From Leucoraja erinacea (Eukaryota), in the NCBI RefSeq assembly GCF_028641065.1, contig NC_073386.1:55242001-55306000 (forward strand): a DNA stretch of 64,000 bases, given 5' to 3'. The notes under the pieces were generated by a model. That model was given only the letters and a program-made list of their open reading frames with translations. It made no database searches and was not told the origin of the DNA. How positions within the stretch are numbered: the stretch's first letter is position 1; every line of letters starts with the position of its first letter. Positions 29,039-37,929 of the stretch are shown here, piece after piece. A program made the position numbers and the translations under genes.

Positions 29039-32000
29039 ACTGCACTTCAAGAGTACTTCACTGGCTGCCTGGTGCAATCGAACCTACATGGAACTAACTG
29101 CCTCTGACTATTATTCAAATATATACTATTTATATCTCCAGCCACCTTGTTTCCTTGTAAGAATTGCCTTTGAAATATAATGGGGTACCAAAGAAATCTG
29201 TCACCATCCCTACAGCACTACTGGGGGAGAGGATTAACTCATGTCTGGCACAGACAGGGTTTATCTACAGTGCTGCACTGAATTGTGTTTCGTTTGCGAT
29301 TACTCTATTTACCAATGGAAGCATGATTGTGGGAGTGTTACCAAGGGCAATAAGGGACAACTTAAAATTCAAAATTTAATTTTAACAACCAATATATTCA
29401 TCAGATAATTGTTGGTTTACACTATTATTGGATTCTAACAATATTCAAATGACAGCGCTGTTGCCTGCAATACCTGGAAAAAATGTGTGTTAAACTGTCA
29501 TCCTTCAATCAAAACCTGCTGTTTACTGCCAACTCATTGCCACGTACTTATCCACTCACCACTAATCCTAAAATAGCACCCCGCCACTCCAAAAGTGCAC
29601 TGATATTGAGTTCTGAGCCTGATGGAACTGGTCGTGAGAAGAGGCAGCATCTTGGGAAGGCGCCAAGCACAACTGGAGCAGAGGAAGGCAAAGTGGCCCA
29701 GAGGTGCCACGGCTCCAGTTCCCAACCTCCCGCATCCAAACCCCCGGCCTCGGCTGCTGTGTGTGTGTGTGTGTGTGTGTGCAGAGGTGTAGTCTACGTG
29801 ATACACAGGTATACGCCGTATACGCACTAAGAAAGCTCCAGCATTTCCGTATGCCCACTTAGAAATGCGCAATGACACGTATCAACTTCGATAGTGACAG
29901 AAGTTCTGTTTATTTTATGAATGAAAGAATGACAGTTCTGTCACAGAAACCATCATACTTTCATTCATAAATTCAACCTGTGCACTGTGTCTCTGTCAGA
30001 GTCGCACTTTTCCTTGTCGGAAGTCGGAAAGTCCCGAGTTCCGAGTACAATGGAACGCAGCATTATAATAGCCATACAGAGGCTTCCGTCCATGGCCCGT
30101 GCCCGTGACCGTGGTGACCGCCCGTGACCTAGACCTGACGTCACGTCACCTAGACGACAGCGATATCAACTCAGTCGGCACCGAGGTGATGTCCAGCGGC
30201 TCAACAGTAAATATGAAGCGGAAGCAACAAACTACCCTTAGCCATTTAAAAAAAAAAGCAAAACAAGCCTGCTGCTGCCTCGGACGACACTCCAGCAGTC
30301 ACTAGGACGTTAGATGAAGAAGAGGGAACTACAGCGGAGCCTGATGCCAGCAGTGTATCGGGTAAGTGAAAGTCGTATACAAGTGAACTTTAGCAGATAT
30401 TAGACTACTAGCTACTAGCTTATAAGAGATTTCCCAAACTGAATGAATACCACACATATATTCACTAAACGGCCTTGCTAGCTCAATCTTGTTGTAGTAG
30501 TAAATAACGTAGTTATTACACATTTTACTGTGAGTGTGTGTGTGCTGAATATCTCCTTGTTCCTTCTAGATGATAACTCCTGGCCAGCCCTATGGACTGA
30601 GAGTCAGGCTAGGGAGTTTAAAAGCAGGCATTCTTGGTTAGAATGGCAGGACAGAAAGTTAGGTAAATATCAGTCAACTTGTAAAGCTGATATAAACACA
30701 TGGTCAACTTTATGCAAATGAGAGTATAGCTGGTTTATTTTCATCTTAAAGATACATTAATTTCACTTTTATACAATTAAATTATAATGATATTGTCACA
30801 GTGAAGCTTATTTACAGTTCATTCAATTATTTTGAATAGATTCTTATCCAGTTCAGAAGGTGTAATTGCTAATATAGATTCAAAAAAGACTACTTGTATG
30901 ATGTTAATTAGTCATGTCTTTGTTTACTTCCAGGTTGTGCTATTTGCAGCTCAACAAAATCTACTGGCGTCTTAACAGAGAAAAGAATTTCCATATCTGA
31001 GGAGTGGGCGATGTTTAAGATCCAGTCATCAGGCTCAAGCAGACCAACAGCACTGGCCTCCTTGAGAAACAAGATCAGACGGCATGAGATGTCCAGGGCA
31101 CACGAAATAGCTCAGGAGCTCACTGAAAAGGGTGGACAGGATTTACTTGGGAATCTTGTGAGAGCTGTGTCACACACTGTGTTAGCTGAGACAAATGCTG
31201 TATTCAGAACAGCATATTATCTTGCAAAGATGAACCGACCTTTCTCTGACCATGACGATCTCATTGAGCTTCAGGAAAAAAATGGTGTCACCATGGGCAC
31301 AAGTCTGCACTCAAGGTTCAGTTCAACAACAATTGTGGAACACATAGCAAAAAAGATGCAGACAAAAATAGTTGACAGCATTGTGTCATCTTCAAGCAAG
31401 CTGTCTGTTCTCATTGATGAGGCAACTTCTCTCAGCCATAAATCAGCCACGATTGTCAATGTGAAGGCCTCTTTAGATGGAGCTACTCCTGAATTTGTTT
31501 TTTTGGACCTGGTGGAGCCGGAAAGCCAGAGGGCAGAGTCTATAGAGGAAGCTCTATTAAACTGTTTGGACACTGCAGGCTTTAGTGAAGAGTGGCTTCA
31601 AAACAACTGGATCTCATTTGTTTCTGATGGAGCCAGTGTTATGTTAGGCAAAAACTCTGGTGTGGCAACCAGGCTGACTGCAAGGTACCCTAACCTCTTC
31701 ACATGGCACTGTATGAACCACCGTCTAGAACTGGCTGTAAATGATGCTGTGGATGAGGTTCAGGCAGTCAACCACTTCAAAGTTTTCATGGACAAACTCC
31801 ACAATCTCTACAGTCAGTCCAATAAAAATTCACGGGAACTTATGGAAGCAGCACAAGAAATGGGCTCACAAGTCCTGAAGATTGGCAGAGTTTTAAACAC
31901 CCGATGGCTTGCCAGCAGTTTCCGTTCTGTAAAGGTTGTGTGGAGGTCATACGAAGCACTTAACAGACACTTTGAGAATGCTGCAGGAGACTAAACAAGA

Positions 32001-32720
32001 AACGGCAAAGAGAGGCAAACCTACAGAGGCCTGGCACGTCGTATGCAAAGCAAGGAATTTCTTTGTGACCTTGGACATGTATGATGCACTATCTGAACTT
32101 TCAAACCTGTCCCAGCAATTACAGGCCCATTCAATCACACTTTTAAGAGCAGTACTGCTGCTGAAGCGCACCATCCGAGTGCTGGCATCATTTAAAGATT
32201 CTCCAGGAGAGAAATTGGAGGAAGCATTGAAAGCACAGGCTTTGGGACAGTTTGGATCAGTGTCCCTGGAGTCAAATGCTAAGCTCATGCTGATCAATAC
32301 AAAGCAGTTCCTACAAAGTCTGATCAACAACATGGAGAAGCGGCTCTCATTTAAGGATGAAATTCTTCATGATCTCAGCATTCTAGATTCAAGCACCTGG
32401 CCATCAATACCTGGCATACGGCACGGTGAGTCACAGGTAAAACGACTGTGCAGGCGATTCAATCTTTGTCAAGAACAAGCTGCCAATGGAATGAGAGATT
32501 TCATCGAGCACCCAGAGAGTGAACCTGAATGCCTCAAACCACTCATCCACTGCATGCAGACCATCCCTTGCAGCACTGCAGAGCAAAGATCCTAGAGGAG
32601 CAAGATAGACCACTCCTCCGAAATCCAATGGACTGACGTGTAGTACGTGACGGAACGTCGCGGCCGCCATTTTTTAATGCGATACGCGACTTCCGGTATG
32701 CCACCCGCTGTGATCCAAAG

Positions 32721-32751
32721 CAAAGATTATAGAACTCCGCTATAATCTTTG
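32721..32751. mobile_element. 31-bp fused-TIR relic (putative P-like excision footprint)
   Basis: ATCCAAAG-CAAAGATTATAGAACTCCGCTATAATCTTTG-ATCCAAAG. Confidence 0.8.
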
Positions 32752-34215
32752 ATCCAAAGCAAAGATCCTCGAGTATCTTGTAGCGGGAACAGCCCCCTCC
32801 TTTGCGTAGTTTCCCTTGCATTGTATTGTGCAGTTTCCCTTGTATTGCTTTAACACACACTGCACAAAATTAAATTTAATGTATACATATTTTATATATT
32901 TATATGAATGTGTGTCTGTGTGTGAGAGGCAAGTGAGAGATAATTAAGTTTATTCTCATGGATCAGAAGCAACGTTGATTTAAATAATCACTATTAATTT
33001 ATTTGTCTTGTAAGATGATATACATAAACCATAAAGGNNNNNNNNNNNNNNNNNNNNNNNNNNNNNNNNNNNNNNNNNNNNNNNNNNNNNNNNNNNNNNN
33101 NNNNNNNNNNNNNNNNNNNNNNNNNNNNNNNNNNNNNNNNNNNNNNNNNNNNNNNNNNNNNNNNNNNNNNNNNNNNNNNNNNNNNNNNNNNNNNCATATG
33201 GATACATTTNNNNNNNNNNNNNNNNNNNNNNNNNNNNNNNNNNNNNNNNNNNNNNNNNNNNNNNNNNNNNNNNNNNNNNNNNNNNNNNNNNNNNNNNNNN
33301 NNNNNNNNNNNNNNNNNNNNNNNNNNNNNNNNNNNNNNCCAACGATCAATAGATTTACGATCAGTTCCTGTGGATTGGAGGATAGCTAATGCTATCCCAC
33401 TTTTCAAGAAAGGAGCGAGAGAGAAAACGGGGAATTACAGACCAGTTAGCCTGACTTTGGTGGTGTGAAAGATGCTGGAGTCAATTATTAAAGATGTAAT
33501 AATGGGGCATTTGGATAGCAGTAAAAGGATTAGTCCAAGTCAACATGGATTTATGATTTTACAATGCATTTAAGCCTCTCCCATTTTTATGAGATGCATT
33601 CCTGGAATATGTAGGAAGTTTATTGTAACCTAGTGCTACATGCCTGAACAATGGATGATATATCACTTAAATGCAATTGTTTTCAGTTGTGTGGAGAGAC
33701 CTGTATATTGAAGATGCTTTTTGCCTCTAATATGTCAATTTACCTTAAATGTAGAAGAGCTTATTAAAATCTTCTTACAAAGACCATTAAGTATTTTCTT
33801 TCTATCCTCTTTTGGACCCAAGGCATAGCAGAGCTGCCAACTCTCACGAAGAGGTAAGGGAGGGAGAGATGGAAGGGAGGGAGAGAGGGAAGGGAGGGAG
33901 ATCGAGAGAAGAGAGGGGGGAGAGAGAGAGAGAGAGAGATCGAGAGAAGATAGGGGAGCGAGAGATGGAGAGGAAGAGAGGGAGATCACGAGAATTAGAG
34001 GGAGAAGGGGAGAGGGAGAACTGGGGGAGGGAGAAGGGGAAAGGGTGGGAGAGGGAGAGAAGGGGTGTGGGGGATCAGAAGGGGGGGAGGGAGAAGGGGA
34101 CAGGGAGAAGGGGGAGAGGGAGAAGGGGGAGAAGGGGAAAAGGGGGGACAGGGTGAAGGGGGACAGGGAGAGTGGAACGATAGCACATTATAACGCGCAG
34201 CCGTCCCATTCCGAC

Positions 34216-34251
34216 CAAAGATTATAGAGCAGAGCTCCACTAGTATCTTTG
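34216..34251. mobile_element. 36-bp fused-TIR relic without a clean TSD
   Basis: CAAAGATTATAGAGCAGAGCTCCACTAGTATCTTTG; flanks ATTCCGAC / ATTGCTGC only partly match. Confidence 0.6.
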
Positions 34252-34294
34252 ATTGCTGCCGCCGCCACCAAACCCCCCGGCCCACCATTGCACC

Positions 34295-34327
34295 CAAAGA
34301 TGATAGAGCAGAGTTGTATAATATTTG
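34295..34327. mobile_element. 33-bp fused-TIR relic (putative P-like excision footprint)
   Basis: ATTGCACC-CAAAGATGATAGAGCAGAGTTGTATAATATTTG-ATTGCACC. Confidence 0.78.
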
Positions 34328-35207
34328 ATTGCACCCTTCTTCACGGCGGGCTTGTGATCTTTGCTTGTGATGTCTTGACAATTCGAGGGATATAACGGGT
34401 AACAGCCGCCCATTCTCGGACTTGAATCTGAGCTCGAAAAATCTCCTGGTCACTGGACCTGATGTGTCCCGCGGGCCATATTGTGGAGACTAATCCCTTA
34501 CAAGAACAAAACCAAAAACGTACAGAAGTGTTAAAATTGTCTTTATTATTATGGTAAGTAAAGATCTATTAAAAATAAGTCTAATAACTTTCTAATGTAC
34601 CGTCAAACCCAGTTTCCCAATGGCCCGTTGATGGGAGAACAGAAAATATCATTTTCATGACAGAATAGCGACTGAAAATAATAAAAATATTTTCTCACCT
34701 TTCTTTTTTATTGGGGAACCTAAAGAATGGCAGGTCGGGTCGTTTAGATTTATGATTAGAATAATTGATAGCAGAGCAGTGAGATGAAATTTAGATAAGG
34801 ACCCCATGACAGTGTGGGGGAAGCCCAATAAATGCCTCGAAAAATGGCGTCGACGATCACACACGTCATACTACGCGTTTTTCGAGGTCTATCTTGCTCC
34901 TCTATAATCTTTGCTGCAGAGTGTGAAAGGGGCTTCAGTCTGATGAATATTGTGTACACAGACCAAAGATCTAGAATGTTGTTGTCTAGTGTCAGCAATT
35001 TGATGATGATCAGCATCAATGGGCCCCCTTGTAAGCCTTTTTGAGCCAAGCAAATATGTATCAACATGGTTAGGAAGCCATCGCTCTGCGACGCAAGCAA
35101 GAAGGCAGAGCACACCTCAGATGCCCGAGTACAAGCAAATTTGGAAAGTTTTGTAAACTAGCAGGCTACTACATTTAAAGTGAAAAACAATTGTTGACAA
35201 AATCCCT

Positions 35208-35280
35208 TTTAGTGGAGTACAAACACTTTTCCATACCTGCTGCAGTAGCAAGTATGGAAAAGTGTTTGTATTCCACTAAA
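35208..35280. other. 73-bp near-perfect palindrome downstream of the hAT transposase stop
   Basis: TTTAGTGGAGTACAAACACTTTTCCATACCTGCTGC-A-GTAGCAAGTATGGAAAAGTGTTTGTATTCCACTAAA; 36-bp arms with 3 mismatches. Confidence 0.9.
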
Positions 35281-36091
35281 TATCCCTCATGTAACTGTGT
35301 ATTCACCTTTGTTTGTGACTTTTTTACAATGAAGGGATTGTGGTGTTTGTTTTATTTTGCATGGGTCATGCGCCCTCCGCTGGTCGTTTTTGCGGATGTA
35401 CTGTTTTTCTTCTCTGTTAAACACTGAACAGATGTTATTTGCATAGGACTTACTGTGATTAAAAACGTGTATTTTGTGATGCTGTGTGATTGCTGTATTA
35501 AATATGAGTGTGAGACGTCTTAGAACAGTTGCTGATATGTTTTATTTATTTTAATTTATTATTTAAGTATTTTTGTATGGGAAACATAATTCTAAAGAAC
35601 ATGTTTTTATTTTGTATTTTTGCATTTATTGTTTCTTATATAGGGTATTTTATTTTATTGAGTTGTAATTGTTTCTGACAAATGACTAACTCTGTTTTTT
35701 CTTGTCTCAAAACTCTAAACAGAGCATGCAGCAGCAGCAGCAATAAATGTCCTGTGCAAAAGACTCAAGTATCCCGTCGTCTCCTTAGCACATTAGTACT
35801 GAGGCCAGGCCGGTTACATATACAGTAGTACAGTGTTTATATAGCCAACAGTTATTTATTTATTGATGCTTTATAGTTTATTTGATGCTAGTGCCTAATG
35901 GTGATTTTAATATGACTGTTTATTGTCCTAGAAACTGATGGCAATATCGAGTGTTGAATTATCTCAATTACTTATGGTGGTTGTAGGCTACTGTATGCGA
36001 CAGTGAGTGTGGCGGTGTTTATAGGATGGGTGTGGAAGAGGCTAGGAGGGAATCATCACAGTATACCCACTACATAAAACTAGACTACACC

Positions 36092-36125
<34 letters not shown>

Positions 36126-36998
36126 CAGCTCGGTCAATCTGTGGCCTTCTTGATTTCTTCCAAGTGCCACGGTTTCCTCTCGCAGATTACACGAGTGCCT
36201 CAATACTTAGAAAATAAAACAATTAAATGTTTGTCAGTATTCAATATCAGTATTTACTTTAATGTCATTTTAACTGAGTACTTACATACACAGATTGGTT
36301 CGGGATAACGTGAGAAATCACCATCTCTCGTGTTCCCGAATCCCAGGTATCTCCGAAGGCTCCTGAATCTAGACTACATAGTGAAATCTGCCCATCTGCC
36401 CATTTACCATTCCCGGCTTCCCCGCCGCCTCACAATCCTATATACTTTTTTATAGTCTATACAACTATACTATACTTATATACCTTCGGTCCACGCCGAC
36501 CAATGATTCCCCGCACATTAAATCTATCCAAAACACACTAGGGGTAATTTAAAATCATTCCAAGCCAATTAACCTACAAACCTGTACGTCTTTGGAGTGT
36601 GGGGGGTAACCGGTGCTCCCGGAGAAAACCCACGCAGGTCACGGTGAGAATGTATAAACTGCGTACAGACAACACCCGTGGTCAGAATCGAACCCGGCAC
36701 TCTGGCAGCAACTCTACTTCTGCCGACCTAGTTTCGATATGCATTCACCCACATCTCCTGCACCCGACAGCTCATTCTAACATGGAATGGTGCTGGAGTG
36801 AGGAGAGAGATCTTTTCACATTTCTCGTGAGATGAGTTTTTAACGGTGTTGCCTGTCTGTCAGATGGTATCCTGGACAGCTATGTAAATGCCCGTGAACT
36901 ATGAACCATTTAAAAGTAACCGAACTCCAATTGCAACAGAAGCAACATGCTAAAGGTAAGACCCCTGCCTCAAATTCACACTTGGCAGCGGTCAGCTC

Positions 36999-37029
36999 CA
37001 AAGATCTTAGATCTGCTCTAAGATCTTTG
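36999..37029. mobile_element. 31-bp fused-TIR relic (putative P-like excision footprint) in unique DNA
   Basis: GTCAGCTC-CAAAGATCTTAGATCTGCTCTAAGATCTTTG-GTCAGCTC. Confidence 0.82.
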
Positions 37030-37929
37030 GTCAGCTCCGTGCCAACAACGCGACAGTTTGCATCCGAAATGTTGGCGCAATTTATATACAGGAATCAGTT
37101 TTGAACATTGTGGCTGTAAGCGGCAGATCTTGGAGTGTGTGTATGCGCCCGACGCGACGCCTTTCCCTAATTCCCGGATCGCCGCCCCCAGGACTGCGCA
37201 TCTTGGGTGAGCCTTCAGAAAGGTGCTCGTGGTTCTGGATGAAAGCATCTTCTTCATCACTTAATCCAGAAAATATATATCTCTTACACAGTAAAAAATC
37301 TTGCTCCAATTTCAAAGCGTGGCTTGAGGGAGCTGCAAATCCAAGCAAAAGCTTCCGAAAATAAACCTTCTATAAAAGTGAAAAGTGACAGTAAGAAGAA
37401 ACTCCAGGTCGAACACCGAATTTCTGGCAATTGGTTGTCCGCCCCCTCCTCTAATCCGGCCAAGATCATGAGAGCGCACTTGGAATACCCTCGGATGTGC
37501 CCCCGAGTTTGTGTCGCCTGGGCCGGGGTGAGGCAGTCGGGATATCCGCGGGCATCTCGTTAACTGGCGTCCAAGAAATGCACGTTTTTGCTGGACAATT
37601 AATTTTCATTTAATATATTCATTTTATTTAATTTTCTAGCAGTCCATGCGCTTCTGAGGGGTGGGAGGGGTATATTAAGTCGGTCAGAGGCGTATCGTTG
37701 TACCATTATTACGATCTCCGTTGATTCGGGAAAACCAATAATACAGGAAGTCTCTGGAATTAAGGATGCTGGAAATTCAACGTTCGACCTGTAACTAAAT
37801 GTTCAAAGAAATGCATTTTTGGTTTTAGTCTCGCAGGGGAACTTATACACATTTTGAACACATTCTGGCATAATAAATAAAAAGGTGGGATGTGCCTCGC
37901 CTCCTTCCTTTGTATATGCGTGAAGATTT

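Follow-up and report, generated by a model that had tools for sequence, protein, structure and literature searches.

Four palindromes of 31–36 bp, here called relics R1 to R4, lie in and beside a decayed transposon in a 64,000-nucleotide (nt) stretch of the genome of the skate Leucoraja erinacea (contig NC_073386.1, positions 55,242,001 to 55,306,000). This whole stretch is referred to as the window, and positions are counted from its first letter. Each relic is made up of a left and a right terminus of the transposon family, fused head to head, and of nothing else. The best explanation of these structures, and in our view a likely one, is that they are donor-site scars left behind by the excision of P-type elements. 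The transposon itself, at 32584–34913, is best read as a defunct, non-autonomous member of the P superfamily of cut-and-paste elements that was inserted in a hAT transposase gene.

An earlier note on this DNA had reported four fused-terminus relics of this size, three of them with perfect and different 8-bp target-site duplications, and these were read directly in the sequence and are far beyond chance. The duplications of R1, R3 and R4 are perfect and all differ from one another, while that of R2 is decayed. The palindrome of R4 is perfect except for its 5-nt centre, and the right tip of R3 reads CAAAT rather than CAAAG. A 13-nt terminus motif occurs 12 times in the window against 1.85 expected occurrences, and 10 of the 12 fall within 32584–37029. 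Head-to-head pairs of termini were found three times (0.03 expected), and the three duplication-flanked pairs compare with 0–1 in 30 shuffles; no duplication-flanked pair was found in the 64-kb window outside 32.7–37.0 kb.

R1 is composed of 13+1+17 nt, with the long arm CAAAGATTATAGCGGAG, a central T and a second arm of 13 nt. The full element has an end of this GGAG type, which the long arm matches up to position 17. R2 can be divided as 17+2+17 (or 19+17, or 18+18), with a long arm ending in GAGCAG, the centre AG and a second arm of 17 nt, and R3 as 19+14, with the same GAGCAG ending and AG centre and a second arm of 14 nt. R4 is 13+18, with the long arm CAAAGATCTTAGAGCAG, the centre A and a second arm of 13 nt. 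A fifth relic of the skate type was found at another locus in sequencing run X18; it is 17+2+17, with a long arm ending in TAGCAG, the centre AG and a second arm of 17 nt. Throughout this sample of about six skate-type relics, the long arm is always 17–19 nt and the shorter arm 13–18 nt, none exceeds 19 nt, and the totals are 31–36 bp. Of the arm counts given in the earlier note (14+17, 17+2+17, 17+16 and 14+17), only that of R2 stands, and those of R1, R3 and R4 are replaced by the values above.

R2, R3, R4 and the X18 relic have GCAG followed by A or AG in common. These letters are probably positions 18–19 of the end of a sister subfamily, which would make the arms concerned 18–19 nt long; because AG follows position 17 in three relics alike, their arms may be 19 nt. 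R1 and R4 have the same 13+18 geometry, and their arms and centres belong to different subfamilies (GGAG and GCAG, respectively). Therefore, a shared mechanism accounts for them better than common descent. No microhomology that would explain the junction was found in R1, R3, R4 or the X18 relic, and in R2 it amounts to 1 nt at most; the window relics and the X18 relic look like direct joins. A 28-nt form of R4 (14+14, with three letters missing at 37012) is present in 1–10 contigs per run, and it is the product expected from GC microhomology.

The element agrees with its description in the earlier note: about 2.3 kb, CAAAG termini, 28-bp terminal inverted repeats and an 8-bp target-site duplication, all of which were read directly. 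Its ends are identical at 26 of 28 positions, the only mismatches being at positions 8–9, and a subterminal inverted pair (17 nt, 82%) is located 74 and 57 nt inward of the ends. The nominal length of 2330 bp includes 286 N; since the interior across 33038–33338 consists of assembly gaps, the length is only nominal and the pairing of the ends rests on the alignment of the host gene. The alignment with a hAT homologue ends at 32583 (...IPCSTAE) and restarts at 34913 (AECERGFSLMN...), and the overlap of three residues equals the 8-bp duplication. Therefore, both ends of the element flank a single insertion site, and the hAT open reading frame (ORF) is split exactly. We also considered this hAT ORF as the transposase of the element itself and rejected it, because the hAT gene lacks such ends and is merely interrupted by the element. 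The coordinates of the relics, the element and the adjoining features are collected in the table.

Table. Relics, element and associated features in the window (positions counted from its first letter)
Feature	Position	Strand	Remarks
R1	32721–32751		31 bp; duplication ATCCAAAG at 32713–32720 and 32752–32759, perfect
R2	34216–34251		36 bp; decayed duplication ATTCCGAC / ATTGCTGC, 5/8 match
R3	34295–34327		33 bp; duplication ATTGCACC at 34287–34294 and 34328–34335, perfect; right arm decayed
R4	36999–37029		31 bp; duplication GTCAGCTC at 36991–36998 and 37030–37037; within single-copy DNA
P-superfamily element, non-autonomous, rearranged	32584–34913	− (transposase orientation)	28-bp inverted ends, 8-bp duplication and exactly interrupted host ORF
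Left terminal inverted repeat	32584–32611	+	CAAAGATCCTAGAGGAGCAAGATAGACC; 3' end of element in transposase orientation; 93% complementary
Right terminal inverted repeat	34886–34913	−	Inverted copy of left; 5' end of element in transposase orientation
Target-site duplication, left copy	32576–32583	.	CTGCAGAG; residues (T)AE of hAT ORF
Target-site duplication, right copy	34914–34921	.	CTGCAGAG; same hAT residues on both sides
Decayed first 30 THAP-domain codons of transposase	34698–34787	−	SSHCSAINYSNHKSKRPDLPFFRFPNKKER; 126–215 nt from right tip of element
Assembly gaps inside element	33038–33194 and 33210–33338	.	15-nt island between them
Host hAT ORF, upstream part	30590–32583	+	KIAA1586-like, DUF4371; decayed, with one stop and frameshifts
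Host hAT ORF, C-terminal dimerisation part	34922–35153	+	Downstream of insertion
Candidate minimal scar	34351–34371	.	CTTGTGAT-CTTTG-CTTGTGAT; 8-bp direct repeat around bare 5-nt terminus; 24 bp from R3
R0, terminus-like piece	32760–32780	.	CAAAGATCCTCGAG+TATCTTG; abuts right duplication of R1; no duplication of its own

CAAAG tips and an 8-bp duplication fit hAT and P elements alike; therefore, coding remnants were sought. The element retains a decayed THAP-domain start near its right tip. When contigs of four sequencing runs were compared, C was read in place of Y and S in place of P (places 34762 and 34730) in nearly every other family copy, and the corrected reading, CSAINCSN...DLSFFRFP, is a proper THAP start. 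When the piece was compared with 1.84 billion proteins using phmmer, all four matches were THAP proteins. The best of them, P0122 (Leucoraja erinacea XP_055522325), is identical at 26 of 30 residues (87%; tblastn E 2e-10, its sole match in the window). Pfam and PDB searches with a 31-residue THAP piece gave no match, and the ESM Atlas returned THAP clusters at 0.79 only, which we take as a lead and not as evidence.

Past its THAP domain, P0122 runs into the start of a P-type helix-turn-helix, and its residues 217–252 are 86% identical to the protein P0132. A protein of Amblyraja radiata, P0128, has a THAP domain and a match to the Tnp_P_element helix-turn-helix of 22.7 bits against a Pfam cut-off of 23, and it overlaps P0132 with 74% identity across 102 residues (E 5e-43). 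P0132 itself contains PF12017, PF21787, PF21788 (the GTP-binding insertion) and PF21789, that is, the helix-turn-helix and both parts of the RNase H domain, and it matches the solved Drosophila P transposase structure 6P5A with an E value of 3.4e-43. These overlaps lead from the THAP exon through P0122 and P0128 to P0132, a complete P transposase, and indicate that the parent of the element was a P-superfamily transposon. The prediction of a P/THAP9-type family, which the earlier note had preferred to hAT, is thus well supported by the homology of these sequences. The 8-bp duplication and the terminal and subterminal inverted repeats also agree with the P superfamily, in which target-site duplications are 7–8 bp long.

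hAT transposons have an 8-bp duplication and YARNG-like tips. If the family were hAT, the relics would not be ordinary excision scars, since hAT excision hairpins the flanks, and hAT footprints are not known to contain element sequence. The CAAAG tips fit the YARNG terminal consensus, hAT duplications are also 8 bp, most of the duplications here have T at position 2, and the element is located inside a hAT gene. THAP-hAT fusions such as THAP12 also exist. However, the duplication and the tips do not separate hAT from P. The relatives of the THAP exon of the element continue into helix-turn-helix, RNase H and GTP-binding domains and not into DUF4371 or the hAT catalytic or dimerisation domains; moreover, the interrupted hAT gene has no such ends of its own. 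The skate element thus resembles hAT transposons in duplication size and tips and differs from them in transposase lineage, and we regard a hAT origin as exceedingly improbable.

The gene models P0122 and P0127 (XP_055522325, LOC129716485; TRIM55-like) were observed to open with the P-type THAP domain, linker and helix-turn-helix start, followed by a B-box and a TRIM coiled coil. Either a fragment of a transposon was exonised in them or the predictions are chimeric.

Related copies of the element were compared in contigs of four sequencing runs with four organism codes over 33339–37300; the left end of the element, R1 and R0 lie outside this interval. The summed contig depth of the right part of the element is 21,000–250,000 against about 10–30 in the single-copy flanks of R4, which suggests that the copies of the family number roughly in the thousands in every run, although depth is a crude measure. 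In three runs, contigs of single-copy depth from related copies skip exactly 34215–34258, that is, 44 nt made up of the 36 nt of R2 and 8 nt. Related copies that are short of exactly R2 plus 8 bp indicate that R2 formerly had an 8-bp duplication. Other contigs have 23–28 nt in place of 34212–34327; they are without R2 and R3 and keep a single ATTGCACC. Because related copies are empty at R2 and R3 with single target sites, the two relics are separate insertion-type events in the lineage of this copy. A single event copied by a 79-bp local duplication, for which the similar flanks of R2 and R3 were considered, was rejected because related copies hold the intervening sequence and single target sites.

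In run X4, which carries a second organism code, the contigs on the left extend to 37025 and those on the right begin at 37022; jointly they span most of R4, and the flanks are about 2–3% diverged. Therefore, the R4 scar probably predates that split. In run X16, one contig spans the site of R4 and includes 21 gap letters; it is uninformative on an empty or different allele.

The cuts made by the P transposase of Drosophila are staggered by 17 nt (PMC7776569), and the donor is left with 3' tails of 17 nt that are not complementary. The repair junctions consist of the duplication, up to 17 nt of one end, 0–15 inserted nt, up to 17 nt of the other end and the duplication again (PMC2895639). The relics are built like these footprints (PMC2895639; PMC7776569), as the earlier note had recognized: they have flanking duplications, at most about 17–19 nt from either end, and a centre that varies. 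Their arms, with a long arm of 17–19 nt, are consistent with long staggered cleavage of the donor like that in Drosophila. Further likenesses to the Drosophila P element are the 8-bp duplication, inverted ends of about 30 bp that start with CA, a THAP start about 130–150 nt from the 5' tip, and the helix-turn-helix, split RNase H fold and GTP-binding insertion in the relatives of the skate THAP exon. In contrast, the ends of the two elements have no sequence similarity, the skate host is a vertebrate, and the skate arms may reach 19 nt. The Drosophila footprints are also products of laboratory assays, whereas the skate scars are old, fixed germline relics that are known from the genome sequence alone.

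On this basis, the following course of events can be proposed. A related element would have inserted at each relic site, creating the 8-bp duplication. Later, it would have been excised by a P-type transposase that has THAP and helix-turn-helix domains and whose RNase H fold is interrupted by a GTP-binding domain, cutting one strand at the tip of the element and the other about 17–19 nt inside, so that each flank would keep a 3' tail of about 17–19 nt. End joining would then have closed the break, with both tails kept at full length (36 bp) or one of them trimmed to 13–14 nt (31–33 bp). We infer the former full elements at the relic sites, the cleavage positions and the repair pathway from the structure of the relics.

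A wider sample was obtained by searching metagenome contigs for the exact relic pattern with a relic length of up to 38 nt. Judging by their project ids, they may be marine gutless-worm symbiont metagenomes. More than 120 contigs (L001–L120; for example, L081:2731–2772, L050:1218–1255 and L035:1953–1978) hold fused-terminus palindromes of 24–42 bp with the same CAAAGAT..TAG tips. The set comprises 111 distinct sites with 92 distinct relic sequences, and the duplication is a perfect 7-bp repeat at 60 sites and a perfect 8-bp repeat at four. Within one subfamily, lengths of 26, 29, 30, 32, 33, 35, 36, 38 and 42 nt were observed. Several forms recur (a 26-mer at eight sites, a 33-mer at four, a 32-mer at three and a 29-mer at two), and these are exactly the forms predicted by microhomology of 2–4 nt between two single-stranded tips of about 21 nt, while the relics found once are direct joins or have odd inserts. 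In the CAAAGATAATAGG... subfamily, which was read by eye, the arms of the five relics never exceed 17 nt, and the duplication is a perfect 8-bp repeat in four of the five. An estimate of arm length from shared prefixes in the metagenome set was confounded by near-identical junction types and was not relied on.

These data bear on the proposal that the relics are mobile micro-elements of 31–38 bp that were moved or copied by a transposase, each marking an insertion and not an excision. Such mobility would agree with the separate duplication of every relic, with the many contigs per genome that contain R4-like sequences, and with identical 26-, 33- and 37-mers at several different metagenome sites. 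However, the relics are not uniform. The four in the window differ in sequence and length, R4 has variants of 28 and 31 nt, and the metagenome sites yield 92 distinct relic sequences, so that the uniform series by which the earlier note would have recognized a self-propagating miniature inverted-repeat transposable element (MITE) was not found. The variety of junction types, and recurrence that matches microhomology, argue against a uniform self-copying element, and the recurrence is explained without transposition of the relics; the singletons have odd inserts. Moreover, the binding sites of the Drosophila transposase are located farther inside the element than the terminal repeat (PMC7776569), and by analogy 17-nt stubs would not be substrates in the skate family either. 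We consider it quite improbable that the relics are mobile themselves. Like MITEs, they are short and non-coding and have inverted ends and a duplication, and the family of the 2.3-kb element is like a high-copy non-autonomous family; unlike MITEs, the relics are only 31–36 bp long, have no internal sequence and differ in their junctions.

Extreme internal deletion of P-type elements upon their excision or breakage would be another way to form such structures, either by abortive gap repair, in which a short stretch is copied from a sister before the ends are joined, or by microhomology deletion between the inverted ends, and the arm lengths would then be uninformative on the stagger. Most wild-type repair products in Drosophila do arise in this manner, with synthesis left incomplete and the ends then joined (PMC2895639). 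Palindromic tetramers in the inverted ends double as direct repeats, by which the recurrent 26- and 32-mers could be deletions, and arms of 19–21 nt exceed 17 nt. Internal deletion should, however, give a broad range of sizes, and all four relics are 31–36 bp as compared with an element of about 2.3 kb. Within 400 kb of contigs that carry relics, just three further elements that have these tips and a flanking duplication were detected (42, 42 and 99 bp), and none was of 100–3000 bp. Internal deletion therefore seems an unlikely origin of the relics.

Several observations nevertheless weigh against excision scars and the cleavage geometry deduced from them. R4-like relics are multi-copy, with bin depths of 69–627 against about 10–30 in the flanks, which also fits amplification of the relic itself. 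Among the contigs compared, there was no site at which one allele or species has the full element and another the relic. The predicted link to P transposases runs through overlapping relatives and not through one DNA copy with both ends and a full gene; the window keeps 30 THAP codons, and a tblastn search with the full P transposase P0132 gave no match in the window nor in the 120 metagenome loci. About six skate relics are too few to show a length cap, to fix the exact stagger or to bear out the local hopping or hotspot that the earlier note suggested from their clustering, and for the arms of the GCAG subfamily, 17 nt plus filler cannot be distinguished from 19 nt. In the metagenome set, the arms reach 19–21 nt, one relic is a perfect 42-nt palindrome, and with the search limited to 38 nt no cap is demonstrated by this set. 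No P-type coding sequence was found in the metagenome contigs either, and they resemble the skate element at the tips only.

A cut staggered by 17 nt is one of the peculiar features of the P transposase of Drosophila. If the relics are excision scars, the skate germline had a mobile P-type family of high copy number, and flies and vertebrates have conserved the long stagger. Scars below the length used in repeat annotation would then record past excisions, so that the numbers of excisions and insertions, as well as end joining in the vertebrate germline, could be studied from them. Tentatively, fused-terminus relics may even be a general fossil record of P-superfamily cut sites that can be read from genomes, with about 17–19 nt per side in lineages with 8-bp duplications (the skate and one metagenome subfamily) and up to about 21 nt in relatives with 7-bp duplications; the long stagger would in that case be ancestral in the superfamily and, for uncharacterised transposases, measurable without biochemistry, a generalization that we hold as possible rather than likely. 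Palindromes of 30–40 bp with flanking duplications should also be annotated with caution, because they may be transposon scars and not regulatory hairpins.

Among vertebrates, the nearest comparison is the zebrafish Pdre2 element with its transposase zfTHAP9, for which the passages of the published report that we consulted describe activity in excision assays (PMC10983969). This element is likewise of P type, and it shares the 8-bp duplication, the inverted repeats in subterminal position and the occurrence of copies with internal deletions (PMC10983969). It differs in having 13-bp ends (CATACCTGTCAAC) and about 50 related sequences, as described there, whereas the skate family has 28-bp ends and, by depth, roughly thousands of copies. 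Those passages report neither cut positions or a stagger nor natural footprints, and no account of P-type footprints occurring naturally in the genome of a vertebrate came to light in our literature search.

Two further terminus-like pieces lie close to the relics. At 34351–34371, an 8-bp direct repeat surrounds the terminal pentamer, which may be a minimal excision scar or, alternatively, a 13-nt tandem duplication. Only four non-simple 8-nt direct repeats at a spacing of 5 are present in the window, and the spacer of this one is the terminal pentamer. In R0, a stretch that agrees with the left end of the element at 13 of 14 positions is followed by a short piece resembling a right tip. R0 is possibly an older scar beside which the parent of R1 landed.

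The interior of the window copy is atypical, because the 736 nt at 33764–34499 (a GA-rich repeat, R2, R3 and the candidate minimal scar) are replaced by 21 nt (CAATACCATGCCTGCCTTACG) in several other family copies. Unrelated repeats are also present in the interior; by eye, 33339–33560 resembles the start of a reverse transcriptase of a long interspersed nuclear element (LINE). The summed contig depth of 33339–33604, which borders the gap, and of 36531–36663 is in the millions in all four runs, indicating extremely abundant repeats.

The host hAT protein is 83–89% identical to copies in distant teleosts and 77% identical to a hagfish protein. This identity is unusually high for hosts so divergent; therefore, horizontal transfer is possible. 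Just 3' of the hAT stop codon, at 35208–35280, there is a near-perfect hairpin with 34-nt arms (94% complementary) and a 5-nt loop.

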